Shown one piece after another: positions 5,241 to 64,000 of a stretch of DNA of 64,000 nucleotides. Position numbers and translations under genes: made by a program. The notes below the pieces were generated by a model that worked only from the letters and a program-made list of their open reading frames with translations, was not told the DNA's origin and made no database searches. The stretch is from Entomortierella parvispora E1425 (Eukaryota > Fungi > Mortierellomycota): positions 2,542,001 to 2,606,000 of the forward strand of contig BQFW01000002.1 in the NCBI GenBank assembly GCA_020891255.1. The letters run 5' to 3'. Position 1 is the stretch's first letter, and each line of letters opens with the position of its first letter.

Positions 5241-5705
5241 GGTGTGGACGCGTTAAAACTTTTTTTTTTTTGTTCTTGCCGTTGTTAGATAGGGTATGAT
5301 AACAGGCAAAGATTGACCCGAAGAGTGTGTGCGAGCTTGGAGGACAGAGGACAAAGGACAATGAAAGAAAGAGACAAAGAGCGACTTAGCAATGGACTCG
5401 GTCGAGCAGGGACATTCAGAATGAGAGAGGAGAATGGCGCTGCGAGTGAAATGCGATGCGATCCGGTGAGAGCGGGACAAGAAGGAGAGCGCGCGAGGGA
5501 AGAAGGAGAGGAGAGGAGAGGCGAAACGAAAAAAAAAAGAAAGAGAAAAAGAGCGGCGCGAGATTATAGGGGGCGAATGATGAAAAGACGAACAAGTGGA
5601 AGAAGAAGAAGGGGGTGTGTGATGGATGGGATGGGATGGGATTGGATTGGACTGGCGTGGACCAGAAAAGGGGGAGAAGAGAGAAAGAGGACTCTTTCGA
5701 GGGAA

Positions 5706-5757
5706 GGAAGCAAGGAAGCAAGGAAGCAAGGAAGCAAGGAAGCAGGGAAGCAGGGAA
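5706..5757. repeat. (GGAAGCAA)n-type 8-nt tandem repeat in divergent promoter region
   Basis: Directly visible gcaaggaa units degrading to gcagggaa. Confidence 0.9.
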
Positions 5758-5914
5758 AGAAGAGAAGAGAAAAGAGAGAAAGAGAAAGGGCTGTTGTGCA
5801 GATGAGAGAGAAAGAGAGATCTGCTCTCTTCTCTCTTTGTCCATGCTCTCCATCCCTGGCCACTGGATGCAACCAGACCCTCATTCACACGCACCCCTCT
5901 TCTGGACTGGCCGT

Positions 5915-6207: not shown

Positions 6208-6627
6208 TTGCCTCTCCTCTTGTTCATCTTCCTCCAGACACCATCCAACCAAACCAACCCACAAAAGCGCGGCACGGAACCCATTCACTCACAGACACAC
6301 AGCGACGCGTCTTTTTCGCTCGTGTCCCTCTCCTGCCAACCCACCCCGCAGAGCCGACTTGTTCACCCACCAAACACACGCGTGCTGGCCGCCCAACGAG
6401 ACCCAAATCCACGCCATCATCCTCCGTTCCTGTCCCTGCAAAGGCTCTTTTTTTTCGCTTCTTCCTCTCTTTCCTCTTTTCCTCTTTTCCTTTCCTCTCT
6501 CGTTTCGTCTCGTCTCCTCTCTTTCCCGCTCAGCTCGCCCCAACTCCATCCCCACTGACCGCCATCTGTCCATCTCTTCATTCTCTACATCAGCTACTTG
6601 ACTGAATCACATACACACCCCTCGGGA

Positions 6628-9600
6628 ATGGATCACGCCGTCTTCAACACCCTGACAGACACGCTGTCTCAAGATGCCAACGTGCGCATGGCTGCAGAGC
6701 TCCATCTCAAAGAACTGCAGACTAATCCAGGTAACTTGCAGAGATGTCTGTTTGCGCATCACCTTCGCCTTTGGCAACGTAGCCACGGAAAGCAGCGAGC
6801 ACAAACTACAGGCGCGTCTTGTCCTCTCCGCCGAACTTTTGCATGTACACTGATGGGCCCCATTCTAACTGCATACCTCGCGTGTTCCTGAAATGCAACT
6901 GTGCACAGAGTTCCCGATCAGTCTCTCCAAGCTGGCCTTGGCGCGAGAGTGCGACCTCTCCCCTCGGCACTCTGCTGCGGTCCTCCTCAAGAGCTATGTC
7001 GACAGTCAGTGGTCCGAGAAGAGTCCAAAGTTTCGTGGGCCAGAGCCCCCCACAGAGGTAACCGGGTGTTTTTGGTCTGGGATCGGGTTTGCCACCAATT
7101 TCAAACTGTTTGCTCCTTTGCTCGCTATCCTTACAACGAGTTCGATTTCCTTTTGGCTCTCTCGTCATGGACCTTTTAATAGACCAAGGCCATTGTCCGC
7201 AACCTCATCTTGACAGGACTCTCCGATCCTACCACCAGAATCCGCACCGCCTGCGTAAGAAAATGTCCAATGGATTCAGACTCTTTGATGGCGCACTATT
7301 CGGCTCACAGATCGCTGACCCCCTATCATGATATTTCAGGCTTATGTTGTATCAAAGATTGCCCATCTTGACTGGCCCGACTCTTGGTCCAACCTACTGG
7401 ATGTTCTTGTGCATCACCTAAAGAGCGGGACGACAGACGAGGTCCATGGTTCAATGAGAGTCCTGGCAGGTGAGTGACCAACACAATCGAACGACCATCC
7501 TGATGCTGCACAGGTCGCTTAGACATTAACAATCATGGTACCCGTAACTCCTGTTGTAGAGTTTGTTAGCAAAGACATCTCTCATGTTCAGCTCCCAGTG
7601 ATAGCGCCTGTCCTCTTTCCAGAACTGCTGCGGATTTTGAAATCAGAACAGGTCAGTGAACGCGACACCTTTTTCATGTGTAGAGAGAGACACACTCATC
7701 CCAGGTTTCGCGTTACTAACGCGTCCACGATGGATTCCATATTCTCTAAATTACTATTGGCAAGTGTAGGCGTACTCCCATGCCACTCGCTCCAGATGCG
7801 CCTCCATCTTTCGGCATGCGGTCGAAATGCTCTTCACTATCAAAGATGAACATCCAGAAGACGTGAAGACATATCTCACACCCATTTTCGCGGATTGGAA
7901 TGACGCCTTCCTTGCAATTCTCAACAAACGCACCACCGACTCGCCCGAGATTGAGGTCGCAGAATGGGGTTTGAAAGCAGAAATATTGAAGGTACTATTC
8001 TATCTCAAGGAAAAAGAAGACTTAAAATGCAGCATGCAAAGAATCTCACCGTTCCTTATTCCTTAGTGTATCAATATGTCGACTGCTGGCTTCCCAAAAC
8101 TCACAGGACCCTACGTCATGCCGGTACTCTCCGCGGTTTGGCAGGATATTGTTCAACTGCGACCAAGGTATCTGCGAGAGAGTGTCAACAGTAACCCAGA
8201 AAGCACGTGGAACACATACCAAGACTCGGATGGCGACAACATTGGGTTTGAATCATTACTCTTTGTTCAGTTTGAATTTATTCAAAGTGCGTGCCGGAGG
8301 GTCAAACTGACAAAGAATGCATTCATCGGCGAAGATGGTCAATCAGGGATCATACATGAGCTCGTATGGAGCGCTTTAAACTATATGCAAATGACGGATG
8401 AACAGGCAGAGTCTTGGAACGCCGATCCGAACCAGTTTATTGCTGACGAGGAGGATGACAGCTGCTCATTCAATGTGCGCATTGCCGCATTAGATATCCT
8501 TTTGACTCTGGTTGATAACTACGAATCTCGAACGCTGCAGACTCTGAGCTTAAGTGTGAATCAGGTCATGACAGACTCACTGAACGACAAGGCCAACGGA
8601 CTCCCTGGCTGGTGGAAAGCCCAAGAGTCCAGTCTATTGGCCGTAGGACTCATGGCAGAGGATATCTGCGATGCGATCAAGAACGGGGAATCGTCCCCTA
8701 TTAATGTTGCGGCTCTTTTCGACCATGTTGTCCTGGCTAATTTGTCCGCTCACGACATTCCATTTCTTCAAGGACGGTCGTTTATTTTCGCCTCCCAGTT
8801 TGCCCCCATCTTACCTGTCAACTTGGCGGCGCAATACGTTTCGGCCGCTGTAGATGCCATACTTAATGCCCAGTCAGCCGTTGTCAAGGTCTCTGCTCTC
8901 AAGGCTCTTAACAACTTCAACCAATATCTCAACAAGGAATACCTTGCACCCCATCAACGAGCCATTCTGCAAGGAATTGCCCCACTTATCGAAATCACCA
9001 CAGAGGAAACTCTGACGTTGATCTTCCGCACGCTGAGCACAACTTCCAAGGTAACTTGATGAGAATCCAAGTATTATCATTGCTGTTTACAGAATGAGAA
9101 CTGACACCTCGTGTTTAGATTGACGAGCAAGTAACAGCCGAATACGAATCCATCTTGGGTCCCTTGGTCATGGAGTGCTGGACAAAATACCCTGCAGAAC
9201 ACTTGATGGCGCCTACAGTTATGGACTTTTTTGAAACCTTGGCAAGCAATCCTTTCATGAATCCTGCCCTGAGCGCTAGAGCGCTCCCAGTTCTCCTGAA
9301 CATGATTTCGGTTGAGTACCCTGACAAACCTATGATGGCTGCTGCCATTGACTTGCTTGCTGCCTTGATTCGCGGTGGACCTTCGCCTTTACTTCCAGGA
9401 TCGATTGCTCAGATTCTTCCGAACGTCATGTCTGTTCTCCTGACTCTAGAAGACCGTGATATTTTACAGGTAATTTCACCTAATTTATTTGGAGTTTTCT
9501 ATCTTTTTGAAAAGATATCAGGATGTAATGAAGAATCCATCATTCGGTAATCTAGAGCGGACAAGAGTGTCTCAAGGTTGTCATTCAGAAAGATCTGCGG

Positions 9601-10964
9601 CAGGTTGTAGAATGGTAATGATTGTGATGTTTCTTTCTGGCGCCTTGGTAGAACCATATCCGAGATCTCACGCGCATTATTATCTTTTTTAGGCGCGAGC
9701 CAACAAGTGGAAAGACAGGTCTAGAACTCCTTCTCCAGTTTATCGCCAAGTTACTCGATCCATCTCAGTCCGAGTCTGCAGCGTTGTTTGTGGGTGATTT
9801 GATTTCCAAGTTAATCAAAAAGGGGGGAGATCTCATCTCCCCGATCCTACCAGAGCTTTTGAATGCGGTGACCATCCGCCTAGTGGATGCAAAGTTACCC
9901 TCGTTTATCCAGGTAAAACATCAGAAATAGCCTCTACTCTTAACCAAGAAGCTTGTGTTGTACCCTCTTGTACTTTCATACTAACTTCTCATAATTCTCT
10001 GAATATTGATCCAGCCTCTTCTCATGGTATTTGCCCACTTGTGCATTGATCAGCATGAAGTGGTTATCAACTTTTTGAGTGGTCTCACGGTTCAGGGACG
10101 AAGTGGACTTGATGTGGTACTTTCAACCTGGCTGATGAACCACGCGGATTTCCAGGGCCTTTACAGCCAGAAAGTGAGGTATGCAATCCGTGAACCATGA
10201 TTTATTGCCAAAACTGACATGAATGATTGTGTAAGGCTAACCGCCTCTACTTTCAAAAACACATAGTGCTGTCGCTCTGACAAAAGTGTTTGCCCTGTCA
10301 GATCCTCGTGTCCTTGCCATTCAAGTGAAGGGTGATATGATTATCACGACCTCCTCACGTCGTGTAACTCGATCCAAGGCCAAGAACAGTAAGTTTTCTA
10401 TGGCTGGTACCTCTTTCTTGCTTCTTGACTTCAAGTAGGACCATCTAACACCACCCCTCTATGCTAATAGCCCCCAACCAATACACTGTTACCACAGTGC
10501 CAGTGAAGATTATCAAACTTCTGTGCACAGACCTGACCAACAAGATTGAGGAAGAGTATGCAGGGGAGCTCGATTCTGAGGAAGAAGATGACGATTCTGG
10601 CGACGAATACGAAGACGATGAACAGAACGAGGAACCGGTAGATGAAACACCCATCGGTCGTCATACCTCAGGAGCAGTCCAAAATAGCGCCAAAGGAACC
10701 TCTGTCAGAGACCAGTATGCATTCCTATCGGATTATTTGGAATCTCAAGGACGCCCACTCGATTATTTTGACGCTGCAGAGGACGAGGCCGATGTGTTGG
10801 ATACGGATGTGCTGAACGATCCCATCTACCAAATGGACATGAAGGACTTTTTGGTCAACTTTTTCCAACAGTGCATTCAGCAAAACTCTCCAGCTTTTGC
10901 CGAGTGTGTTGCAGAGCTCAGTGAGGTCCAGAAGCAGACACTGTCAGCCCTTCTTGAAAACTAA
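6628..10964 (+). CDS. IPO9: Importin-9 (Kap114) family karyopherin, multi-exon
   Basis: ATG at 6628 gives MDHAVFNTLTDTLSQDANVRMAAELHLKEL (IBN-N-like). Later segments are RHSAAVLLKSYVDSQWS, WNADPNQFIADEED...VRIAALDIL, WWKAQESSLLAVG, PFLQGRSFIFASQF and TTVPVKIIKLL followed by an acidic tract and DPIYQMDMKDFLVNFF. Stop at 10964. Confidence 0.9.
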
Positions 10965-11217
10965 GCGGGTCAAGGACAAAGGGTTGGCTTGGCCCACTTC
11001 TTCCGTTTCATTGGACCAATCAGCGATATATTTGTTGAACAGAAAGGACAGATATGTAGATAGGAATACGTGGTATAAAACGGTTTCTTTATTGTACAAT
11101 GCCTCCTCGGAGATGCGGACGGGACTGTGGTCAGAGTGTCCTTTTAGAGTTGGTGGTGAATTTGGCCCAGCTATCCCGTTCCTGCTTCCAGAGACAATCA
11201 AGTAGGGGATCTCACGA

Positions 11218-11785
11218 CTATTTGGCATCCTCCACTTTGTATGTGTTCTCGTTCAGGATCTGGTCAATATCCTCCCTGAGTTGATCGACACAAGACGCAT
11301 CCACAAAGACATGAGTGTCGTCCAGATCCTCAATGATGAATTGACCCTTTTCGTTCAAACCCAGGATAATCTGCTTCACAGCAGAGTCGCTATCACATGA
11401 AAAAAAAAAAAAAAAAAAAAAGGTCAGGGAAAACATTCTTTTTAGCTCTATGCGCCACCAATTTTCAGGAATGTAAAAATGCATGTGTCCTGATTTGTAA
11501 TTTCCTGAAGAGTGCATTAGAGCCTTTTTCATTGTTCCATTGCTCTATTGTCGACAAGAACCGGGACTCGAGAGGCGAGGTCAGGTAGCCGAGGAAAAGC
11601 ACAGCACTGCACCCAAAGCTCCAAGCAATTCATTCAGAGCTCTTCCGTTTTCTTTACCATTCGACAACGACACCTAACATGAACATGCACAACAGAATGA
11701 ATACAGGGACGACTCATGACTTTCTTTTTTATCCTTATTTCTTGAGCTCCTTTCAGAGGTGAATACCTTTAACAGCTTTGACCAT
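11218..11785 (-). CDS. TFB5: TFIIH subunit Tfb5/p8 (68 aa, 3 exons: 11785-11767, 11673-11658, 11389-11218)
   Basis: Spliced product [41 protein letters not shown]...NENTY. Both introns are GT-AG, and the exon lengths of 19+16+172 nt total 207 nt in frame. Confidence 0.92.
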
Positions 11786-12265
11786 GGAGCAAACGTTTTT
11801 TGGGGGTTGAGAGGAAGGTGTTGAAAGACGACATGGAGGGAAGCCCTCGTTTTTGAAAAAAAGATTGGATCACGTGAATGTAAAATTGGTGGCGTCGTCT
11901 TCCGACTCTTGCGTTGCGCGTTTGCCATCCCTCTCGATAGCACAATTTCTTGAGCGGGTATCGCACCAATGCTTTGTAACAACAATGGTGATGGCAGACA
12001 GAGCAACATATCTTATCGGCCTCGCTCTTGGTTTTGCACCGCCCTCGTCGCGATCGGGTTAATATTTCGGGCATTTTTTTTTTTCCTTTTTTTTTTCTTG
12101 TGCAAATGCAAGATCATCCTTTTATCCAGATAAAATCCTGGTATCCACATAGGGTCAAGGAAAGAAGAAAAGCCTCCACTGAGAGTACAGTGGAGAAGAA
12201 ATTATTATTTTATTTCGTAGAAAGAGTACATCCCAATAAATCGTCCAGCCGTGTTATGGCTACAC

Positions 12266-14166
12266 CTAATGCTCTCGAGGCAATTCCTGAAGTTTTCTTT
12301 GCGCGTTGGTATCTCCTTGCATGGCCGCTTTGTTCAACCACTCGGCGGCCTGCCGATAATCCAAGGGAACACCGTCTCCTCGCTGATAAAACACGCCAAT
12401 ACTGTATTGAGCCGCTGCGTTTCCTCGTTTGGCCGCTTTTAAATACCATTGCGCCGCCTGCTGATAATCCCGAGGGACACCTAGGCCACGTCGGTACATT
12501 TCACCAATATTGCATTGAGCAACTGCGTCTCCTTGATCAGCAGCTTTCCTATACCAGTCCATGGCCTTCAAGCAATCCTCTGCAACGCCGTTTCCATGCC
12601 GGTACATAGCACCAATGTTGCATTGAGCCACAGCGTGTCCTTGATTAGCAGCCTTCAGGTACCATTCTCTTGCCTGATGATAATCCTGGGAAACACCTTC
12701 TCCACGCCGGTACATCAACCCAACGTTGTATTGAGCCGTAGAGTCTCCCTGATTGGCAGCTTTCATATACCATTCCATTGCCTTTTGATAATCTACAGGA
12801 ACACCATGGCCGTACTGGTATAGCACGCCCAAATTACATTGGGCAACAATGTGTCCTTGATTAGCAGCCTTCAGATACCACTCCAGGGCCATTTGATTAT
12901 CCTCGGGAACGCCACTGCCGCGCTGGTGCATCAGACCAATGTTGTACTGAGCAACAGCGTAGTCTTGCTGGGCCGCTTTGAGATACCACTCCCTGGCTTT
13001 CTGGATATCCTCAGGAACCCCTTTTCCATGTTGGTACATGAGTCCAAGGTTGCACTGCGCTGCGGCATCTCCTTGATGGGCGGCTTTGGAGTACCATTCC
13101 ACGGCCGTTTGGTAATCGACAGGGACACCATTGCCGCGCTGGTACATCACACCAATGTTGCACTGGGCAACTATATGTCCTTGTACAGCGGCTTTCAAAT
13201 ACCATCCCATGGCTTTCTGATAGTCTAGAGCAACCCCTTGTCCACGCCGGTATATTAGGCCTACGTTGCACTGAGCAGCAGCATCCCCTTTGTGGGCAGC
13301 TTTCAAGTACCACTCTGCGGCCTGTTGGTAATCCTGAGGAACTCCATAGCCACGTTGGTACATCAGACCCAGGTTGCACTGGGCCGCAGCATCTTCTCGA
13401 TGGGCAGCCATCAAATACCAGTCGACTGCTTGCTGGTAGTCCTGAGGAACCCCCTGTCCACGTTGATACATCAAACCGATGCTACTCTGAGCAGAGGCGT
13501 GTCCCTGATCTGCAGCCTTCAGATACCACTCGGCCGCCTGTTGATGATCCTGGGGAAGACCTTGACCTCGTTGATACAGCACGCCCATCCGGTTTTGAGC
13601 AGAGGCGTTGCCTTGTTTGGCCGCCTTCAAAAACCACTCTGCTGCCTGCTGGTGATCCTTGGAAACGCCCTCTCCTCGTTGAAACATCACCCCGAGGTTG
13701 TACTGAGCAACAGCGTGCCCTTGCTCTGCAGCTTTTAGAAACCATTCTTGGGCCGTGGAGTAGCTCTGTGCCACGCCTTTGCCCTCACGGTACAAGACCC
13801 CGACACTGTTCTGGGCAGAGGCTTTTCCTTGAACGGCGGCCTTCATAAAGCACTCGAAGGCGCTGGCGAGCTGCTGCTCACTGTTGATAGCCCTGGCGCC
13901 TGCTCTGTTCTGAGCCGTTGGACTCTCTTCATCTATACCGTCTAAACTAGGAACCACGGCGGTTTCATGGTCAAAGGAGTGGGACATTCTTGTTAAAAAG
14001 GATGCAAATGACTGACACAGGGTGGGACTGCCCGTCTTGCTCTTTACCTGAGTCCATCCAACTCGTGTGTTAAATCGGCGTAGGCTGGTGGAGTCTTTTC
14101 AAAAAAGTTGCGGAATCCGATGTTATTGTGGACTCGATCCGGAGTGGTAACAGGGGTAATTGGCAT
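12266..14166 (-). CDS. Sel1-like repeat protein A (599 aa; 14 Sel1 repeats; N-terminal PPAY motif; 2 exons 14166-14048, 13946-12266)
   Basis: There are 14 36-aa units of the pattern AQxNLGxMYxxGxGVxxDYxxAxEWYLKAAxQG. Upstream exon MPITPVTTPDRVHNNIGFRNFFEKTPPAYADLTHELDGLS joins through a phase-2 GT-AG intron (14047-13947). The ORF-track start at 13987 lies inside that intron. Confidence 0.9.
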
Positions 14167-27813: not shown

Positions 27814-28491
27814 GGTGCGTCCGTTCGGGTGCTGGGTAGTTGCAGGGGTGTATTTAGGGGTGGGAAAGAGACGGAAAGAAAAGAGAGAAGGCAGACAAGA
27901 CGGATCCCCCCCCCCCTTCTTTTGGATCGATCTGCGCGTTTGACGTTGCGTTGCAGGCAAGCGAGTCACATTGTCTTCGCGTTCGTGTCGCGTGTGTGTC
28001 GATGGTGGTCGATGGTGGTCGATGCTGGCTCGCTCTTTGGCTTCTGTCGCTGCCCCTAGGCAGGCTGCTCGGACGAAAGAGTTTCTAGCCAACTCCTTGA
28101 CCTACTGGAGTCCATCCATCGACTGGAAAATGGGGCGCCTCTGTGGCCCAAACAATTGTGCCTTGCCCTCGCTGCTTGCGGGCTGATTGTCGACAAGATC
28201 TGGCACTCCCGTCCAGCATCCAATCATGGCCACAGCACCGCTGTGCCCCATCTGACATCCTTTGCAGAACACAAGGACAACAAAGAATGGCCCAGGCAAG
28301 CCAACAACACAGCGTGAGCAACGCACGGCACCCCACCGCTCTTATTTCACACGGGAAGACAGGCTCGACCCCTCTTCTGTTGTCGACCGTCCTTCCTCTC
28401 TTTTTTCCGCTCCATTCATTCATCTCAAAGATCATTTCTCCATTTGAATTTGTTCATTCCTCCCGAAAAGAAGTTCAACAAACTCAAAGCC

Positions 28492-31400
28492 ATGACGCGA
28501 GCTCTGTCACCCAAGGATTCTGCTCACCTTGCGTCCAAGCGCGCGCTATCCATCCCAGAAATCTTAGAAAGGATCTTTTCCTACTTGCCAGACAAAGCGC
28601 GAGATCGAGTAGGTACGTTGGTCTGCAAGAGCTGGCATGCGATCCTCTGTTGCCAGCATCACGAAAACCACCACCGGTATCCTCGCCAACTCGTCCAGAT
28701 TATCTTCTGCAAAAGAGACTGGCAGACCCATCGTCATAGCTTTGGATACACTCACGACAATGTTACAGCCATTGGCTCTACTCGCGGAGGCCTCTTTGAT
28801 GTCCGCTTCGGATGTTGGACAGATCAAGTGTCTCCTCCAAAGTTTGAGTATCCTGATATTCCACCCCAGCCAAGGGCAAATCGAAAGAATCAGGCCTTCT
28901 TAAAGACTTCCCGGGACGTCTTGGCGTATCCAGTGAAACCATGCATTCTCCAGTCTTCCCTATGGCCCACCCGACTCCCACCCAATATGTGGCAATATCA
29001 TAACGAGTGGGGGTATTTCAGTTTCCGCGACCGAATCCCGGGTCTGGCCCGTGTGGCTCCAGATCCGACCAGCGAAAAGGCGAGTTGGTTGGACTATTTG
29101 GACGGTCTTGGTGCGCTCCAAATGATTCTGACTGGCCGGAACAACACCTTGGCAGACTTTTATCCCATTCCCACCTTCAAAGCCGCCGAGAGATGGCAGG
29201 CGCGAAAGGACCTTTTGGAGGCACTCAGAATTCTCTCTGGATCTGCTTCCTCTCAAATCACGCCCCACGTTGGATATAAACCGCGGGAGCGATTCGCATT
29301 GCTGGAACTCGAGATTCTCTATTTGGATTTGACATATCCTCCACTTCAAGTCGAGGAGGGCCAATCGGCGGTACCTGATGTTCTCTTCGGGCCTGTGAAT
29401 CCAAAAGAGGAATATGTGGCGACAGGGGATGACTATGAAATGTTTCTACGACCGCTGACCTCGATCCCAGGAGTGTCTTGTCATCTTCGAAAGCTGGTGC
29501 TCAAACATTTGATGGTTTGGCCTGGGATTGCACAGTCATCAGATATGCGACGCAAGGGTCGGAGAACCCAACGACAGAAAAAGGGCGAGGGGTTGAAGGA
29601 TGACGAGGGATTATTTCCGATAGGTCCAATTCTCAAGACCTGTCGCCAACTAGAAGAACTCACCCTCGAGTCCGATGATCCATGTGTTAAAGAAGGACGA
29701 AAGATGAACTGGCGGCCATCTGACTGGGAAAGAATCATGATCACTTTGGTTCTCTTTATCGACGGTGCTTGCGATGAGGACGACGGAGGGGAGATGAAGG
29801 AACCCGTGCTCGTAGACGTCTCAGAGCTTGGCGATGATCCTGACCAGCCCACATACCCATGTGAACCTCTGCAAACTCTGTCTGGGTTAAAGCTGAAAAA
29901 GTTACGATTGAAGGAAATCCATGTGCCCGAGGCTGTTCTACAATCACTGATTCAGGCTTCACCCTCTTTGTCAGACCTCTGGATCCAAGCGCCTGTGACC
30001 GAGTTTCCTCCGGGTACTTCTCTTTCGTCCCTGAACCTGATGGAAGATGAGAGACCCCCCAGGCACGATTTTGGTCCGAATGTGACTTGCGACCGAATGG
30101 AGTTTTTTCGCGATCTAGGCGCCCGATGGCCACAACTCACCAAACTACACTTTTCAAAATCGGAACATCGGTACACAGCAGCCCAGATGCGGACTATATT
30201 GAAGGCATTCCCAAATTCAAGTCAGTGGACCATTGGATGGAGGGAGCTTGGAGGTGGAGTCCTTGAGGACTTGAATAGGATTGTCGCCAGAAGCAGTCTG
30301 AACAGGACCCTTGTTGACATGGAAGAAAGTCAAGGCAGCAGCAATGGTGGGCAGTCGTTTTACCGCACTCCAGGGCTTTATGGCAACTTCTTGACGTCTT
30401 TGGACATTGTACCGATCAGGGATTGGTCACCTCAGTGTGGCGACGTAATCCATGTCTTCCTTTGTGAGGCGTGGCACCTGGAATACCTTCGGGCGGGATC
30501 CATTGGGTGCTATTTGGACAATCTAGACTTGAACAATGTTTTGCAGACATCAACCACCGTTCTTTCTGCGGAATCCATCAATGACGAACGTGGTCCTCAG
30601 AGCTATTCTCGCCAGAGGAGAGAGACAGGCCTTTATGAGTTTAGCCCCAAAGCGGTATGGGCGTGTCGAAATCTGAAGGTTTTGCACATTGAATTTACAC
30701 GGCGCCGGACAGCAAAACAAGATAAATATCGCCCCTCTTACCGCCAAGTCTCCATGGCAAGTTCTCAGTCTGGAGCTACTGTGGACGGACCGATGGTACA
30801 AGTTGGCCCTGAGCGTTGGAACGCTCAGCACCATGGTGCATCCTTAGGATGTCACAAAGAGGAATCAGTTGACCCCGAAAAGGCCTCGCGAGTCGTCTTT
30901 GGATATCTGGCGCGGTTCTGTCCCCGTCTTTGTGAAGTCACCCTTGAATGCAGCCTGCTGTCCCTGAGTCTTGAAGGTGGTTTTACAATATTGACGAGGA
31001 TAAAGACTCTGAAAAGGATCTCTATTTTTCATCTCAGGACGGGATTTGAAAAACGAGACGTCCTACCATGGGTGATCAAGAGGTTCGCTTCATCAGGCTC
31101 TTCTCGACAAGAAAATATCATGGGAGACCCCGCGGTTGCAATTAGGCTTTGGACCTACCGGAGAGAGATTCGCAGACTTCGACGCAATAGTGAGAACGAA
31201 CAGCGTGCCATCGTTGGAACAGGCGACTTGGCTGAGATCAACAAAGACGAGAACTCGGACCGAAATGGGGGCGGTTTTTCCAACACAGAGGGAGCCCAGT
31301 GGGTGTGCACTGTATCTAAGGATTGTTACCGGAATCTAGGATACCTGCAAGATTTAGTTCTTACTCTATCGGATCTGATCGAGAAAGACCATCCGAAAAC

Positions 31401-31578
31401 TGGTCGTCTCTCCAAGGTCACACCGTCCTTTGGAGTTAATGACGGGGAGACGTGGCCAGATCTGGTTCGATTGCAGCTTGTCTACATGGAGACACATCTT
31501 CACAAACCATTTCTAGTTCCTTTGCTGCGCAAATATCGCCCCGAGATGGACATTGTTTGGGACAAGTATAGAACATAA
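28492..31578 (+). CDS. F-box-like/LRR-like protein, 1028 aa, intronless (family expanded in Mortierellaceae)
   Basis: N-terminal ALSIPEILERIFSYL...LVCKSWH F-box motif. Degenerate LRR-like units (LRKLVL, CRQLEELTL, LKLKKLRL, WPQLTKLHF) and VWACRNLKVLHI...VFGYLARFCPRLCEVTL, typical of this family. Confidence 0.8.
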   Translation: MTRALSPKDSAHLASKRALSIPEILERIFSYLPDKARDRVGTLVCKSWHAILCCQHHENHHRYPRQLVQIIFCKRDWQTHRHSFGYTHDNVTAIGSTRGGLFDVRFGCWTDQVSPPKFEYPDIPPQPRANRKNQAFLKTSRDVLAYPVKPCILQSSLWPTRLPPNMWQYHNEWGYFSFRDRIPGLARVAPDPTSEKASWLDYLDGLGALQMILTGRNNTLADFYPIPTFKAAERWQARKDLLEALRILSGSASSQITPHVGYKPRERFALLELEILYLDLTYPPLQVEEGQSAVPDVLFGPVNPKEEYVATGDDYEMFLRPLTSIPGVSCHLRKLVLKHLMVWPGIAQSSDMRRKGRRTQRQKKGEGLKDDEGLFPIGPILKTCRQLEELTLESDDPCVKEGRKMNWRPSDWERIMITLVLFIDGACDEDDGGEMKEPVLVDVSELGDDPDQPTYPCEPLQTLSGLKLKKLRLKEIHVPEAVLQSLIQASPSLSDLWIQAPVTEFPPGTSLSSLNLMEDERPPRHDFGPNVTCDRMEFFRDLGARWPQLTKLHFSKSEHRYTAAQMRTILKAFPNSSQWTIGWRELGGGVLEDLNRIVARSSLNRTLVDMEESQGSSNGGQSFYRTPGLYGNFLTSLDIVPIRDWSPQCGDVIHVFLCEAWHLEYLRAGSIGCYLDNLDLNNVLQTSTTVLSAESINDERGPQSYSRQRRETGLYEFSPKAVWACRNLKVLHIEFTRRRTAKQDKYRPSYRQVSMASSQSGATVDGPMVQVGPERWNAQHHGASLGCHKEESVDPEKASRVVFGYLARFCPRLCEVTLECSLLSLSLEGGFTILTRIKTLKRISIFHLRTGFEKRDVLPWVIKRFASSGSSRQENIMGDPAVAIRLWTYRREIRRLRRNSENEQRAIVGTGDLAEINKDENSDRNGGGFSNTEGAQWVCTVSKDCYRNLGYLQDLVLTLSDLIEKDHPKTGRLSKVTPSFGVNDGETWPDLVRLQLVYMETHLHKPFLVPLLRKYRPEMDIVWDKYRT

Positions 31579-58017: not shown

Positions 58018-60366
58018 TCAAGGCCTTTCCACCAAGTCTCCAGACCTCAGTCGAGGCCAACTGTCACTCATCCACTGCCTCTCGCCTTCGCTGACTCTAT
58101 GCTCATACTTGTGGATGTAGACAGCCCTCAATTTCTTCAACGATTCCAGCTGTTGAACCCCAGAGTCAAAACTCCATTCGAGGGTATAGGGTCTCCGTCG
58201 CCGGACCCACTCCCCCCTGTAGTTAGGCCGAAAATAGCCCAAATCCAGGACCTCCAGATCTGTCCATTTTGCCAACACAGAGAATACCTGATGTTGGATT
58301 TCTCGGGAGCGTTGTTGGAGCATCAATAGTTTTCGACGGCGACAAAGCTGTTGTATCTGCTTCTTGCGCTGCTGCATTGAACTGTGCTCTTCGTTGTCGT
58401 CCCCGCCTGCTCCGTCTCGTCTCCCTTCTCTTCCAATCGCTTCCCCTTCCTCTCCTCCTTCTTGCCATTTCGCTCGCTCGGCTGCTTCATGCCGTCTAAC
58501 TTCATCTAATTCCATATCGGATTGCTCCAGATATATCTCTTCTTGATCTGTCAAGCGAGGGACACCTAGGATCCGACACGAAAACTCTTGCATGCCAGTG
58601 CAAACCCAAGGCTGAGACTTGACCACATCAACGGCTCGAAGGACCAGGTCAGGGCCTTGAATCGATATCAGGTCCTTGCAAGATCGCAACAACAAACAAA
58701 TGGCCAAAGAGCTGCGTCCTCGAAACTTTGTAACCTTCAATCGTTGTAACTTGGGACAATGCCATGTCAATCTCTCAAGGACCTCTGTTCCCAGATTTCC
58801 TCCAAACTCGACTTGGGTCAGGAACGGCATGTCTTGGATCGCGTCAACGATATCGGGTAGAGGGCGGAAGCGTTTTAATCTCAGGGCCAGTTCTCGGACA
58901 GGTAGTTCTATCCCCTTGGTGACGGCCCACGTTTCAGCCGAGCTTGGGAGCGAGCTTGGAGGGCGCTCGGTATGTCTCCAAGAATCCGATACCCCGACAC
59001 GAAAGACTTTGCATTGAGGCATGTACATTCTCAGCAGAGGCACCAAGTCCCAAACCTCATGCCCCAACTGAAGGGCCTCAAATTCTTGTAGTGCCTCGAA
59101 ACGGACTCGGAACGTAGCTAGGCAATGCGCCTTGCCCTGGATTGAAAACTTTCTCAAGGAGGTGTTGACCAGAATGTCTCTTTCCTCCGCCTTTTGAACT
59201 GCACTCTGGCCCACCGCTGGCATGTGTAATTCTTCTAAGTTGGGAAAGATCTCGATAAAGAATCGGACCCGGGAGGCCGTGGTAAGACGACAGCCCAAAG
59301 ATAAACGACGTACACCCGTGTTCAAGAACCTATTCCGCATGAGATTCCAACTGACATGATCTGAAGGCAGAGCAAAGTTGCTCTTCACAGATGTATACGA
59401 TCGTATGCTCAAACACCCGTGACGTTGCCGCTGGGCCATCACCTCGAGCAAAACCTCCTCCGCATCCGAAAGACCTGGTTGGAAATGAGTCAGATTCCTG
59501 TGGGAGCTAAAAATTTGGTTCAAGAAATAGGCCGCGGGAGACTTCTGAAGGAAGAAGGACATGCCATCCGTGGACTGTTCTATAGGATGAACCCCTTCGG
59601 TAGCGTCATTGCCATGTGCATTGTCCGGAGCATGGCGTAGCTCAAGAGTCATTTTTTCAAACGTCACCTGAGACTCAAAGGTCAAACGAGTTAGCTTTGG
59701 AGATTTTTGGATCAATTGCCAGATGGCGCGACCGAACCGCTCCCGGTCTTGATACCCTATGGCAGGCTTTGCAATTATACTAGATATGTTCAAGAGAAAC
59801 ATGTCCTTTTCCAGTGGAAGTAGCCATCCATCGTGTAAGGAAGATGCGTCAGGGGTGACCATGCTTTCTATTCTTGTTGTCTCTTGGTCTGATTCCAATC
59901 GAGAGAATAGACCAGTCCTGAAACCAGACTGAGGGATCCGGCTTGCCTCTGGGATCCAATTGAGATTTAGGACAAACCAGGCTGGATCCAATGTCAGAAC
60001 CAACAACTGGGTTGACTGTTGCTGGGTGATGGACCACTCCACAAAAAGATCAAGGGTCCAAGGGAGTCGAAGATCAAGTTGCCGGACATGGTGAAGGAAC
60101 TGTCCGAGATAGGCGCGTCTCTCTAGGCTCTCCTCTCGGGACTGAGGGTTCGAATACTTTCCCTTGTCTTTAAACCAGAGCTTCCTGAATGTTATCCCGA
60201 GACGAGTAAAGGGTGAATCGTCAATATGGCGCCAATATAGGGGAATGAAGATCTGACGCCAGGCACGGGAGACCTGTGTGCAAGCAGCAAGACTGCTTTC
60301 TCTCTGCATTGCCTGTCCATCGAACGAGAGCATGAGATGTTCGACCAGTTCGGGCAAATGGAACAT
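58018..60366 (-). CDS. F-box-like/LRR-like protein, 782 aa, intronless, intact
   Basis: MFHLPELVEHLM...LAACTQVSRAWRQIFIPLYW F-box. Later segments are FPNLEELHM, HCPKLQRLKV, QPWVCTGMQEF, QVFSVLAKWTDLEVLDLG, TLEWSFDSGVQQLESLKKLR and WMSDSWPRL, the typical family C-terminus. Confidence 0.85.
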   Translation of the reverse strand: MFHLPELVEHLMLSFDGQAMQRESSLAACTQVSRAWRQIFIPLYWRHIDDSPFTRLGITFRKLWFKDKGKYSNPQSREESLERRAYLGQFLHHVRQLDLRLPWTLDLFVEWSITQQQSTQLLVLTLDPAWFVLNLNWIPEASRIPQSGFRTGLFSRLESDQETTRIESMVTPDASSLHDGWLLPLEKDMFLLNISSIIAKPAIGYQDRERFGRAIWQLIQKSPKLTRLTFESQVTFEKMTLELRHAPDNAHGNDATEGVHPIEQSTDGMSFFLQKSPAAYFLNQIFSSHRNLTHFQPGLSDAEEVLLEVMAQRQRHGCLSIRSYTSVKSNFALPSDHVSWNLMRNRFLNTGVRRLSLGCRLTTASRVRFFIEIFPNLEELHMPAVGQSAVQKAEERDILVNTSLRKFSIQGKAHCLATFRVRFEALQEFEALQLGHEVWDLVPLLRMYMPQCKVFRVGVSDSWRHTERPPSSLPSSAETWAVTKGIELPVRELALRLKRFRPLPDIVDAIQDMPFLTQVEFGGNLGTEVLERLTWHCPKLQRLKVTKFRGRSSLAICLLLRSCKDLISIQGPDLVLRAVDVVKSQPWVCTGMQEFSCRILGVPRLTDQEEIYLEQSDMELDEVRRHEAAERAKWQEGGEEGEAIGREGRRDGAGGDDNEEHSSMQQRKKQIQQLCRRRKLLMLQQRSREIQHQVFSVLAKWTDLEVLDLGYFRPNYRGEWVRRRRPYTLEWSFDSGVQQLESLKKLRAVYIHKYEHRVSEGERQWMSDSWPRLRSGDLVERP

Positions 60367-60609
60367 TGTGGATCTAATGATGAGATGAGGAATTGAGAGA
60401 TGAGGAATTGAATGAAGCAATGCTCAACAAGAATGTGATTATTGAAGGGGGAAAACATGAGCGCCCTGCACCGCGCCACCGTCGAGTCATGACTTGTCGC
60501 GTTTTATCTTTTGTTTATTTGTGTCCCCTCGCCTTCCTTTGCTCGTTCGTTTGCTCCAGTTGTCGAAAGGAGTTGCTTTCAGCCTCGTCCATGACGCATC
60601 TTGATAGCC

Positions 60610-61781
60610 TCAAGATCTTAAATTGGCTGCCTTCTCGCGCTGTTCCGTATCCCGCTTCATGGCTTTCTTCGCGCTCCGTAGCACATCCCGTGTTGCTTCT
60701 ACCGCGACTTGGGACGCGCGCTCAAAATCACTGTAGGCCTTGGATCTAAAGTTGGCTTTGACTCTTGAAACCGACTCTAGCTGCGCGATGGCGGCTCGAG
60801 CTCCATTGTACGCTCTCATCAATTGCTCCATGGAATGCGTCTTGCAGATCGCTCCATCTGCAGTCTTGATCAAAGAGGCCGTAGCCACCGGCGCAGCCTT
60901 GGCCGAAGAGATCAAGCCTGCAGTCCAATGAAACTTCCTCTCGTAGTACTCAGCGCTCGTGGCTGTCCCTCGGCTTTGGGCCACAATCTCCTGTTGTGAC
61001 AGGGTAGCACATTTTGCTTGGTGAGCCATGGCCTGCACCATTACCATTGCCTTCTCGACGATCGAGGCAGTGGTCAAGTGAATTATTTCTGGAAATCTTT
61101 GAATGAGTTGCCGAAATGCACGACAGAACCGCTCCTGGTCTGGAAAACTTGTGCGCATCTCTGGAACCCAGTGAAGCATTCTTGCTGGAGCGCGTGAAAG
61201 AAGCATTTCTTGCTCCAGTGGAGGTGGAGGTGGCGGCTCGTCATACAAAGGAGACGCCTCAAGGATGGATATGTCTTCGTTTTCTTTTTGCTCATCTTTT
61301 TCTACCTCATGAAAAAATAAACCGAGTCTGGGACAGATCGAAGGGGGACAACACGGCTCGGCATCAAACGTATGAGTGATCCAACACATCCCCAGTGCTA
61401 AGGTCAACAGATTGGTGGGCTGCTGGTAGATGGTAGACCACTCCAAGAAAAGATCAAGAGTCCAAGGATATTGAAGATCAAGATGCTGAACATGACGGAG
61501 GAATTGCCCAAGATAGGCGCATCTCTCTTGACTCTCCTCGCGGGATTGGGAGTCCGAATACCCCTCCTTGTCTTTGAACCAGAGAGACTTGAATGTTCTT
61601 CCGAGACGGGTTTGGAGTGTGTCGTCAATGTGTCGTCAATGTGGCGCCAGTACAGTGGAATGAAGACCTGACGCCAGGCACGAGAGACTTATATACAGGC
61701 TGCAAGACTGTTCTCTTTTTGAGGTACTTTTATGTCTGAGTGTCTGTCTTTACCCTTTTCTAGAATACGCCCAAGGATCAT
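60610..61781 (-). pseudogene. Chimeric relic: duplicated F-box-like N-terminus fused in frame to an Sla2/HIP1 I/LWEQ (talin-like) fragment
   Basis: 61381-61710 is a clear nucleotide paralog of about 60020-60310. It carries an in-frame TAA (61691-61689) and an 11-nt tandem duplication (61619-61640) that shifts the frame. The downstream frame is open to 60610 and ends in QQEIVAQSRG...WTAGLISSAKA...EQL...AQL...SRVKA. Confidence 0.8.
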
Positions 61782-62091
61782 CCTCCAGAGATCCAAACCT
61801 CAATCTTGGGGCTGGAGGCCACTTATCAACTGCCCCTCCCCTTCTTTTGTTGGAGTCAAAGTTCCACTCGAGGACAGGGCCAGTTCTGTCCACTCCGACA
61901 GCATAGAAAAGATCTGTTGCTGGAGTTCTCGAGATCGTTGTCATCTCCTTCACCTCCTTCATGTATACTCTCTCTCTCTTCCATCAACAAGTTTACAGCA
62001 CGACGCCAAGTTTACCCAAACTTAGAGGCCATTTAATATTTGCACAATCTGAGCCTGTGATCACTTGCATTTTCAGATAAGTTGAGACCAA

Positions 62092-63547
62092 TCAATAGAT
62101 TGGTTTGCGACCAGCCTGCTTCAGCTTCTGTTGGATTGCACTGAAAATCGGCTTGTGTGCCTCATTTGCATCCTTAAAAGCGCTCTCTGCTTTTCTGATG
62201 ATGTCTAACCACCCATTCATCTGTTTTTTCAAGTCTTCGACCCGAATTAGGGCGGCTTCCAATTCATCCGGGACACCATGAACGGGTTCAAAGACAAAGA
62301 CTTCAGCATGTGTGACTCTTCGACCATTCTGCCCACAATTACAGGGATGATCACGTTGCCTCTGTACAAGGACTGCATGCAGGATCTGCTCAAGCAGGTG
62401 GACTCCAAACAGTGGTGAAAGCAGGGTAGTATGAAGGCCATTTCGAGTTTCTTTGACCTCACTTGGAATCACTGCCAAAGCGCGACGATATATGGTCTTG
62501 CACTTATAGCCCTCAATACGCTTATCGACGTCCTTGGAATATCCGATCTTGATCGACAACCTTCCAGAATTCGGAGTATCATCTGCAGGAAATAGAAGGC
62601 ACCAAGAGCCATTAGTCAAAAGCAACAATATATACATTCATGCTGAAGCCCAATAACTTGTCCACGATTACCGTTTTTATACAGCACGGCATACACATAT
62701 CCCTGCGCCAACTTGTCTCGATACTGGCCATGGATATTTCGCAGTTCTTTATCATCACAGTCTTTGTTTGCATCCAGACCCTGCATGATTCCTTCATGCT
62801 TCTTTTTGGCTGCTTCCACAGAGTCAAAGTTGAGGAGGTCTTGAAATTCTTGAATGACCTGACGAATGTTGTCCTTGATTTCACTGGAGTATGAGTAATC
62901 AAAAGCCATCTCTATAATGCGGCAAGAAAGCGAAAGCGGTGGGTATTAACACAACAGATCATCCCTGTTTTACAATCCTGAGCTCTTTCATTCGCTTCTG
63001 GTTACTTACTATCAAAGTCTTTGCCAGATATGAGGACATTCTCTCGGTCCCCAGCCTGGAGTAAAAAGTCCTTCGATTGAGTTCGAAATCGAGTACCAAA
63101 TATACGACTTTTATCATTGAGACAGTGGTACCCACACTGGAACGTTTGCTCGTTGTCATGTGGATGCAGGAGTTTATAGGAGGCGCGGTTGCATTTTCTG
63201 TGAACACAGTCCAGGCGCCACTGGTCAGCTATTGCTGACCCGTGGTCTTGACAGTAGAAACTTGAAAAATAAAAGTTTTCGATACTTTTTCTCTCACATT
63301 CCTGGCAGGTCATACGGGCCCAGTTAGCCTCTGGATTGAGCATGGGGCCATTGGCAAAGGGGTCTGAGTTTGTTTGAACTGAAATAACGGTCGTCTCGTT
63401 TTCTGACGCTTCTTCAGAGGTAGAAAGTGACCGAACAACAGTATTCCTCAGGGGTGCAGCAGGAGCAGAATCCGAAATAGTCAGGCTTTTGACAGACTTC
63501 AAAAGGTCATCGTCGGTGTATACAGTGTTGGATTTTTTGGGGGCCAT
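62092..63547 (-). CDS. T5orf172/MUG113 (GIY-YIG superfamily) domain protein with Cys/His-rich N-terminus, 422 aa, 3 exons (63547-63010, 62911-62672, 62582-62092)
   Basis: Splicing reconstitutes GYVYAVLYKNDDTPNSGRLSIKIGYSKDVDKRI...HLLEQILHAVL...CNCG...THAEVF. Exon lengths of 538+240+491 nt total 1269 nt in frame, with GT-AG introns. Confidence 0.78.
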
Positions 63548-63624
63548 GTTGGGAAGCAAGTGTGATGGAAGGTGAAGCATGATAAAAAAAGAGAGCACCA
63601 GTCTATAATCGGTTGTGGCAGAAT

Positions 63625-63715
63625 CCTTTGCTTTGCCCTCGCTTTGCCTTTGCTTTGCCTCTGCTTTGCCTTTGCTTTGCTTTTGTTTACGTTGCTTCGC
63701 TTTTGCTTTGCCTGT
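63625..63715. repeat. Degenerate (GCTTT/GCCTTT)n tandem repeat between the T5orf172 gene and the F-box relic
   Basis: Reads tttgctttgccctcgctttgcctttgctttgcctctgctttgcctttgctttgc... Confidence 0.85.
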
Positions 63716-63719
63716 TCCC

Positions 63720-64000
63720 ATCTAGCTCGCTCAGCCTCCAATCCGATAGTGGACAGCAACACCAAAATCCCGCATCCCAGAATAAACCCGAGGTTGAGAA
63801 TTGATCACATCAATGGCACGTATGGCCAGTTCCGGTGCCTGAATCGATTTCAGATCACTGCAATCCCGATAGCAAGCAAAGAGCCCGAGAACTGAGCCCT
63901 TGCATCCCCCGGGATCTTCAACTGCCGCAGCCTCGGACAGTGCCGTGCCAACGTCTCTAGAATCCCGGTTCCCAACTTTCCATAAATTTCCGCTTTGGTC
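63720..64000 (-). pseudogene. Frameshifted, internally deleted F-box-like paralog fragment (continues beyond the right end)
   Basis: The minus strand gives GKLGTGILETLARHCPRLRQLKI. After a shift at the C5 run (63906-63910) it gives CSDLKSIQAPELAIRAIDVINSQPRVYSGMRDF, then EAERARWE in a further frame. These are colinear with GNLGTEVLERLTWHCPKLQRLKV...CKDLISIQGPDLVLRAVDVVKSQPWVCTGMQEF...EAAERAKWQE of the 58018-60366 gene. Confidence 0.75.

Follow-up and report, generated by a model that had tools for sequence, protein, structure and literature searches.

The 64,000-nucleotide window analyzed here (Entomortierella parvispora E1425, GenBank assembly GCA_020891255.1, contig BQFW01000002.1, positions 2,542,001 to 2,606,000) contains near its end a chimeric locus, in which the N-terminal part of an F-box-family gene is joined in frame to a piece of the I/LWEQ (THATCH) domain of the neighboring gene SLA2. 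Comparison with similar genes and proteins leads us to regard this locus as probably a young pseudogene that formerly encoded a functional F-box-plus-THATCH-core protein. Its substitution pattern is that of a fast-evolving real gene, which would not have been junk from the start. The chimera lies on the minus strand; the stretch from 61736 to 61072 is paralogous to the adjacent F-box-like gene, here called B, and the rest is derived from SLA2. The relevant features are as follows.

61072 to 61736, minus strand: F-box-family-derived N-terminal part, identified by BLASTP against B; equivalent to B codons ~16 to 252, with the F-box motif represented by its second half alone.
60613 to 61071, minus strand: copied SLA2 I/LWEQ (THATCH) segment with core helices 2 to 5, identified by Pfam PF01608, alignment with SLA2, AlphaFold2, and Foldseek.
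60610 to 61635, minus strand: open frame across the junction, 341 codons plus stop, from translation.
60610 to 61047, minus strand: GenBank-annotated coding sequence of 145 amino acids (P0091), whose first codon is the Met at 61047; NCBI, UniRef, and nr all contain this exact sequence.
61689 to 61691, minus strand: in-frame TAA within the part of the F-box motif that is left, from direct reading; B has Gln here.
61619 to 61640, minus strand: perfect 11-nucleotide tandem duplication in two copies, causing a frameshift just after the F-box motif, from direct reading.
58018 to 60366, minus strand: intact F-box-like gene B (P0088, 782 amino acids), directly downstream of the chimera, present as an open reading frame and an annotated protein (L010 10682 to 13030).

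L010 denotes the 20-kb locus around the chimera, and a window coordinate equals 71048 minus the L010 position. Read from 61635, the frame continues for 341 codons to a stop at 60610 to 60612 and is free of other stops and of indels. The junction is in frame and exact to about 1 nucleotide, with F-box homology reaching to 61072 and SLA2 homology beginning at 61071. A preliminary description of this DNA, made from the letters alone, had placed a seamless switch at about 61075 and had reported the TAA, the 11-nucleotide duplication, and an open remainder of about 278 codons with in-frame Met codons. The in-frame switch (61072/61071), both lesions, and five such Met codons (61389, 61206, 61179, 61158, and 61047) are all there, and the remainder does stay open, but its length had been underestimated, as 341 codons are found (61635 to 60613). 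The two copies of the duplication occupy 61619 to 61629 and 61630 to 61640 and extend the spacing of the paralogous blocks from 1404 to 1415. An intron that would skip both the TAA and the duplication was considered and rejected; no plausible splice pair was seen by eye, and the one candidate that was checked creates a stop. The 145-amino-acid annotated gene (L010 10001 to 10438) is the I/LWEQ remnant, and this GenBank gene model is best understood as a fragment of a broken chimera.

The derivation of the C-terminal half from SLA2 is evident at the level of profile, sequence, and predicted structure. Its match to Pfam PF01608, at 70.1 bits (E 2.8e-19), is far above the cut-off of 27.5 bits, as expected from the I/LWEQ resemblance first noticed; it extends over profile positions 1 to 103 of 151 only, with positions 104 to 151 unmatched. 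Matches in the PDB include the HIP1R THATCH core (1r0d, E 2.8e-15), Sla2 (9hdd, E 2e-9), and the talin core. The copy shares clade-specific residues with Mortierellaceae SLA2 proteins and aligns with them at 56% amino acid identity over 145 amino acids, without gaps over 145 to 153 codons. Identity to the adjacent SLA2 is 56% for amino acids and 71.2% for nucleotides, compared with 68.2% of nucleotides for the second E. parvispora paralog, the SLA2 genes of other species also giving lower values; DNA divergence from the genomic SLA2 genes is ~29 to 33%.

An AlphaFold2 model of the parental C terminus (P0262 residues 790 to 1048; predicted local distance difference test [pLDDT] 83.6) shows which elements were copied. 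In this model, the upstream helix occupies residues 21 to 48, the core helices occupy residues 57 to 95, 101 to 137, 143 to 164, and 173 to 208, and the latch occupies residues 218 to 252. The copy spans residues 64 to ~217, that is, helices 2 to 5, and starts seven residues into helix 2. A five-helix core is accordingly not present, the upstream helix (21 to 48) being absent; the alignment stops before the latch, and no latch-like DNA was found downstream of the copy. Neither the ANTH domain nor the coiled coil of the Sla2/HIP1R architecture is present, and the chimera holds part of the THATCH domain only. The copy itself is modeled as a confident four-helix bundle with long helices (AlphaFold2, pLDDT 76.8), and the top Foldseek match of this model is HIP1R 1r0d_A (TM-score 0.79, root mean square deviation 2.7 Å), a result with some circularity, since the model was built on an alignment derived from SLA2.

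Many radical substitutions had been noticed in this segment, and indeed, of 64 residues found to be invariant among 15 fungal SLA2 sequences, 37 are retained and 27 are replaced, including four radical changes beside the conserved tryptophan. In the tryptophan block, W62, T63, and G65 to S68 are retained and K57E, N60F, R61H, and E64A are replaced. The label "actin-binding domain" given to this half in the preliminary description is thus apt insofar as the I/LWEQ segment is a true one, but too generous for helices 2 to 5 without a latch and with these invariant residues altered. In End4, the upstream helix inhibits actin binding and the latch dimerizes the domain, binding being dependent on dimerization, and a monomeric End4 construct without the upstream helix was diffuse and inactive in fission yeast cells (PMC11476202). 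Because the copy lacks both the upstream helix and the latch, it would be de-inhibited yet monomeric. As there is no latch and the conserved KKNNRWTEG block carries radical changes, the module is unlikely to have been a strong actin binder.

Almost all of the Mortierellaceae sampled have two SLA2 paralogs, which fall into two clades, with Actinomortierella sequences outside both (P0241 to P0283, L008/L009). Across the THATCH segment, the two E. parvispora copies are identical except for 1 of 145 residues, with a number of synonymous substitutions per site (dS) of ~1.4. In the SLA2 protein tree, both have the Gryganskiella cystojenkinii paralogs as sisters rather than their E. lignicola or E. 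beljakovae counterparts, and Entomortierella is not monophyletic in the SLA2 gene tree.

The N-terminal half is shared with B, in line with the F-box-like N terminus originally proposed from the neighboring gene. The frame from 61635 to 60613 is 46% identical over 195 amino acids to the product of that gene (60366 to 58021; BLASTP E 1e-41), and the DNA of 61072 to 61721 is 72 to 82% identical to that of 59680 to 60306. Homology to B starts at window position 61736 (L010 9312), corresponding to B codon ~16, and what is left of the F-box motif matches that of B at 72% over 36 amino acids. B scores 18.6 bits (E 0.0016) against the Pfam F-box-like family PF12937, below the cut-off of 24.3, and the F-box profile gives weak matches in two of three family members; by eye, the motif is evident in B (LPELVEHL...VSRAWRQ...LYW). 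The open frame does not contain a complete three-helix F-box, as the chimera has neither the first (LPxE) helix nor the start codon. Because these are absent, the TAA lies inside the motif, and the frameshift follows it, the F-box half is dead and unable to work at present. For the same reasons, the earlier suggestion of a new E3 receptor or an integrated decoy cannot hold today. The statement that a leucine-rich repeat (LRR) region had been replaced was not borne out, there being no significant LRR match in B; the sole LRR hints are the matches of one relative to PF24758 (E 9e-4) and to COI1 (E 0.42).

Two possible extensions of these homologies were also rejected. The sequence LDLWRMILGRIL upstream of the TAA was considered as the missing first F-box helix, but this DNA, read in another frame, aligns to the region that encodes the C-terminal end of the F-box family. 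Similarly, "EQEML," considered as SLA2 sequence upstream of the junction, is F-box-paralog sequence (PLEKDMFLL in B; QEQEALLSR in L002). Just upstream of the start codon of B, at 60382 to 60411, there is a perfect 15-nucleotide tandem repeat (two copies of GAGATGAGGAATTGA, plus strand). The only two database homologs of B (53 to 57% identity), together with a close SLA2, come from JGI metagenome 3300029943 (L002, L003, and L005), a sample that probably includes an unsequenced relative of E. parvispora.

The origin of the chimera can be approached through the arrangement of its parents. The parent SLA2 is EMPS_01672 (P0262, 1048 amino acids), which lies on the same contig and strand ~5.3 kb upstream of the copy, just past the window end; positions 7731 to 7984 of the SLA2 locus L008 are 100% identical to window positions 64000 to 63747, placing SLA2 on the minus strand of the window. 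The second E. parvispora SLA2 paralog is EMPS_10926 (P0263). The annotated genes of L010 share one orientation and comprise SLA2 (1318 to 5301), a T5orf172 gene (7501 to 8956), the 145-amino-acid gene (10001 to 10438), and B (10682 to 13030). In addition, an unannotated pseudogene, the F-box paralog A, is found right downstream of SLA2 (L010 5522 to 9263; window 61785 to 64000 and beyond). The parts of this region within the window are as follows.

63761 to 64000, minus strand: middle part of paralog A, continuing past the window end towards SLA2 (tblastn of B residues 517 to 599).
61785 to 61941, minus strand: decayed C-terminal relic of A, equivalent to B codons ~684 to 735 (tblastn, 42% over 31 amino acids).
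62092 to 63547, minus strand: T5orf172-domain gene, annotated and intact, 422 amino acids (Pfam PF10544, E 4.7e-8; L010 7501 to 8956).

Paralog A carries at least six in-frame stops and three frame changes in ~540 codons (nine lesions), and the T5orf172 gene splits it between its codons ~596 and ~689, with A fragments on both sides. The C-terminal relic of A gives a local DNA alignment with B at L010 12733 to 12888 (z 18.7), and 48 unassigned nucleotides lie between its end (window 61785, L010 9263, B codon ~735) and the F-box start of the chimera. An 11-nucleotide-period repeat array (CCTTTGCTTTG-like) occupies 63625 to 63719, within a lysine- and glutamine-rich open reading frame at 63002 to 63721 on the minus strand; relative to the T5orf172 gene, whose 5' end is annotated at 63547, the array is located at this end or immediately upstream of it.

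Comparison of L010 with itself by BLAST aligns SLA2 4707 to 5042 with the copy at 9976 to 10311 (71.2%, offset 5269), the start of A at 5520 to 5902 with the start of B at 10680 to 11062 (70.2%, offset 5160), and A at 6350 to 7289 with B at 11543 to 12472 (64.9%), the A/B offsets being 5160 to 5193. The copy precedes an F-box gene in the same relative position as SLA2 does. The locus thus shows adjacent parents on the same strand, a diverged duplicate of each part, and colinear flanks. As the donor is ~5.3 kb away, on the same strand, and flanked colinearly, the arrangement identifies local segmental (tandem-type) duplication as the origin, and not retroposition or transposon capture. We propose that a block from within the last exon of SLA2 was copied ~5.3 kb downstream in an array of the form "SLA2 then F-box-family genes," and that its fusion to codon ~252 of an F-box-family gene preserved the reading frame. 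The product would have consisted of an F-box region, a linker, and a four-helix THATCH core without the auto-inhibitory helix and the dimerizing latch. A nucleotide tree groups the copy with the adjacent SLA2, although with weak support (63% ultrafast bootstrap). In G. cystojenkinii, too, SLA2 is followed by F-box-family genes, and no second I/LWEQ is found within the 6.3 kb of sequence after SLA2; the duplication is therefore most simply placed after the split from G. cystojenkinii.

A retroposed origin had been raised in the preliminary description, which pointed to the absence of introns. Acquisition of the I/LWEQ piece by retroposition of SLA2 mRNA, or by transposon capture of the Helitron or Pack type, is highly improbable. 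The copy does lack introns, but this is uninformative because the parental segment belongs to a last exon that is itself intronless, as in every Mortierellaceae SLA2 examined, and there was no intron to lose. The short distance to the parent (~5.3 kb), the shared strand, and the colinear F-box flanks also argue against it. There is no poly(A) after the copy, which begins mid-exon and mid-helix and lacks the mRNA 3' end; flanking repeats are absent as well, and with no terminal inverted or direct repeats bracketing the copied piece, transposon capture was rejected. Virtually negligible is an assembly artefact that joined unrelated reads. The copy differs by ~29 to 32% in DNA from both genomic SLA2 genes, which would be impossible from a mis-join of SLA2 reads, and the same sequence is annotated independently in GenBank. 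The E1425 assembly (BQFW01) combines Nanopore sequencing with Illumina polishing (x409) and was annotated by AUGUSTUS with cDNA hints (PMC8759367).

Whether this junction produced a gene can be judged from the pattern of substitution. In the copied segment, Mortierellaceae SLA2 orthologs are at least 91% identical, with 0.01 to 0.05 nonsynonymous substitutions per site (dN) and a dS of ~1 or more. A branch test with a custom-written GY94-type codon model gave dN 0.31, dS 1.44, and a dN/dS ratio (omega) of 0.21 for the copy branch, with likelihood ratio test (LRT) statistics of 18.9 against omega = 1 and 26.2 against a background omega of 0.01. Three other placements of the copy gave omega values of 0.13 to 0.22 (LRT 17.7 to 23.6 against 1). 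A parsimony count, limited to codons identical in the adjacent SLA2 and G. cystojenkinii SLA2, for which the ancestral codon is known, gave proportions of 0.65 for synonymous (pS) and 0.26 for nonsynonymous (pN) changes on the copy lineage (Fisher p 5e-7), and omega was ~0.25 with three references. In the F-box-derived part, omega is 0.55, compared with a family background of 0.64. Neutral simulation left the I/LWEQ part stop-free in 3 to 5% of runs and the 341-codon frame open in 2% at 0.1 substitutions per site. Paralog A provides an internal control, with nine lesions in ~540 codons compared with none in the 341 of the chimera.

The omega of ~0.2, the open-frame simulation, and the lesion-free frame beside A together argue that the frame was selected for most of its history. 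Purifying selection kept the chimeric frame for most of its life, at a level far looser than that acting on SLA2, and a folded bundle appears to have been kept while its surface changed. With omega significantly below 1, the original impression of a genuine new gene rather than junk is upheld. It could instead be supposed that the chimera was never functional and arose as a by-product of a decaying F-box array, its frame staying open by chance. Its place among relics (A, split by the T5orf172 gene) would suit such a history, as would the alteration of 27 of the 64 residues invariant in SLA2, conserved positions not having been preferentially retained; a neutral chance of 3 to 5% for a stop-free I/LWEQ part is small yet not negligible, and a same-strand duplication gives an in-frame, same-sense junction by chance in about one third of cases. 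We nevertheless consider this history unlikely, as both likelihood, on four topologies, and the parsimony count put omega significantly below 1, as the alignment with SLA2 is free of gaps over 145 to 153 codons despite ~33% nucleotide divergence, and as the frame has no lesions next to the nine of A.

The account of a locally duplicated and subsequently selected gene has to accommodate several observations that weigh against it. As to selection, the omega of 0.55 for the F-box part is just marginally below 1 (LRT 4.3). Synonymous sites are near saturation in all comparisons, because of which dS and timing are imprecise, and dating by dS was abandoned for the SLA2 comparisons. Retention is 58% at SLA2-invariant and 49% at variable positions (p 0.32), and because invariant residues were not retained significantly more, the constraint that acted was not SLA2's own. 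As to origin, one tandem duplication with its breakpoints in SLA2 and in an F-box gene should produce the order SLA2, chimera, intact F-box gene. Paralog A would then not separate SLA2 from the chimera, or else another intact F-box gene would follow B, and neither is seen. In the tree of N-terminal F-box sequences, the chimera and B form a pair (87%) that excludes A and a metagenomic homolog, which is at odds with the simplest interpretation of the colinearity. The intergenic sequences of the two units show weak homology (z 1.5 to 4.3). The spacer comparison is powerless, as alignment fails even for spacers that are orthologous between E. parvispora and G. cystojenkinii (z 1.8), and one A-rich match (z 4.3) is no more than suggestive. 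Given the extra A and the lack of an F-box gene beyond B, at least two rearrangements must have occurred. These could have been a duplication followed by deletions, or else two nested duplications together with a repeat-mediated deletion. The 109-nucleotide difference in offset would fit a later loss of the latch-coding end.

When these results are placed in a functional context, the intact protein was probably an SCF-type (Skp1-cullin-F-box) adaptor whose usual C-terminal region had been swapped for a helical-bundle binding module, and the binding specificity of this module had probably been altered. The locus as it now stands is most likely a recently disabled gene. Recent disablement fits because the 11-nucleotide duplication is still perfect, the F-box stretch is the part of the chimera most similar to B (82% of nucleotides), and the long frame is intact.

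It is possible, though somewhat doubtful, that the locus still encodes a shorter product, a monomeric four-helix THATCH core translated from an internal ATG. Translation would begin at the annotated start at 61047 (145 amino acids) or at one of the upstream ATGs between 61389 and 61158 (up to 259 amino acids), the F-box stretch being a mere leader, and the product could compete with or modulate Sla2 partners. Such a product would be consistent with the annotation of the 145-amino-acid coding sequence by AUGUSTUS with cDNA hints, with 341 lesion-free codons although A and the first ~50 codons are full of lesions, with the omega of 0.2 on the copied part, and with the confident four-helix bundle of the model (pLDDT 76.8). 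Conversely, no promoter of its own is recognizable, the upstream sequence being a decayed gene end; the monomeric THATCH domain without its upstream helix was diffuse and inactive in fission yeast (PMC11476202); and no ortholog was found in the other genomes or metagenomes searched. A further and rather unlikely proposal is that the fusion was a selected, lineage-specific new protein and that its THATCH-core part may still be one. The fusion could then have been an SCF-type adaptor with its substrate-binding region swapped for a de-inhibited, latch-less four-helix Sla2 module, or its remnant could now be a free mini-THATCH of 145 to 259 amino acids that tunes the Sla2-actin link in endocytosis. 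If this were true, the locus would be a dated example of the recruitment of a core endocytic, force-transmitting domain to a new role.

The reading we prefer, a once functional and recently disabled fusion, was set against what is found elsewhere. The pairing of an F-box-family region with a THATCH core was not found in ~5.8 billion clustered proteins, ~1.8 billion cluster representatives, and JGI metagenome contigs. An intact ortholog of the fusion was likewise not found among 87 matches of 188 to 597 amino acids (relatives shorter than 188 amino acids could escape), among the best 150 of 330 representatives, or on the two metagenomic contigs with F-box homologs. Literature that mentions F-box together with I/LWEQ contained, by title or abstract, no report of such a fusion. 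One candidate second fusion, with an I/LWEQ near the N terminus of a 1082-amino-acid protein (P0092), was rejected as a partial SLA2 model overrunning the gene end. This GenBank "sla2, partial" entry (Lunasporangiospora selenospora, JAABOA010002604.1, L004 23 to 3523) extends ~730 residues beyond the true SLA2 C terminus and looks like a read-through gene-model artefact. Our locus is a lineage-specific instance of a process already known, and its combination of domains was found nowhere else in these searches.

The known process is best documented in Drosophila, where chimeric genes at tandem-duplication junctions have been described at genome scale (PMC5460883, PMC4069613). As in those chimeras, two neighboring parents of the same orientation each contributed a part, one the 5' and the other the 3' part, across a sharp, in-frame junction, and intact parent copies are found alongside. 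In contrast to them, the E. parvispora case is old (~30% DNA divergence) and not segregating, it sits in a multi-copy F-box array and took more than one rearrangement, and its host is an early-diverging fungus.

Comparison with the two parental families gives a similarly mixed picture. The chimera resembles the THATCH domain of Sla2/End4/HIP1R in its significant match and in having the same four core helices predicted (1r0d_A, TM-score 0.79), but lacks the ANTH domain, coiled coil, upstream helix, and latch, and its omega is 0.2 rather than 0.01. It resembles the fungal F-box-like families (PF12937), which form fast-evolving tandem arrays, in that its N-terminal 250 codons are paralogous to B, a gene with homologs in related Mortierellaceae, and in an omega of ~0.55 to 0.64, typical of a fast family. 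Unlike those families, it lacks the first F-box helix and start, its motif is cut by a TAA, and the usual C-terminal region of ~530 residues is swapped for the SLA2 piece. On this comparison, the chimera would be classed neither as a member of the Sla2 family nor, at present, as an F-box protein. A looser analogy may be drawn with the integrated decoys of plant nucleotide-binding leucine-rich repeat (NLR) proteins, where a fragment of a host housekeeping gene is likewise fused to a member of a fast-diversifying, clustered family; the chimera differs from these in having no immune-receptor domain.

The value of the locus lies in a traceable birth of a new gene by local duplication in an early-diverging fungus, for which donor, recipient, junction, decayed sibling control, and selection signal are all located within 12 kb. 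The copied module is a four-helix bundle without the upstream helix, which according to recent work on End4 is the active actin-binding state, but the latch is missing here. An expressed remnant could serve as a natural experiment on the End4-type mechanism; a dead one would be a clear example of F-box arrays gaining and discarding pieces of neighboring genes.

Elsewhere in the window, a further F-box-like gene is present at 28444 to 31578 (PF12937, 24.9 bits), and a 573-amino-acid open reading frame at 12266 to 13987 on the minus strand contains 14 Sel1 repeats (Pfam E 2.6e-157).

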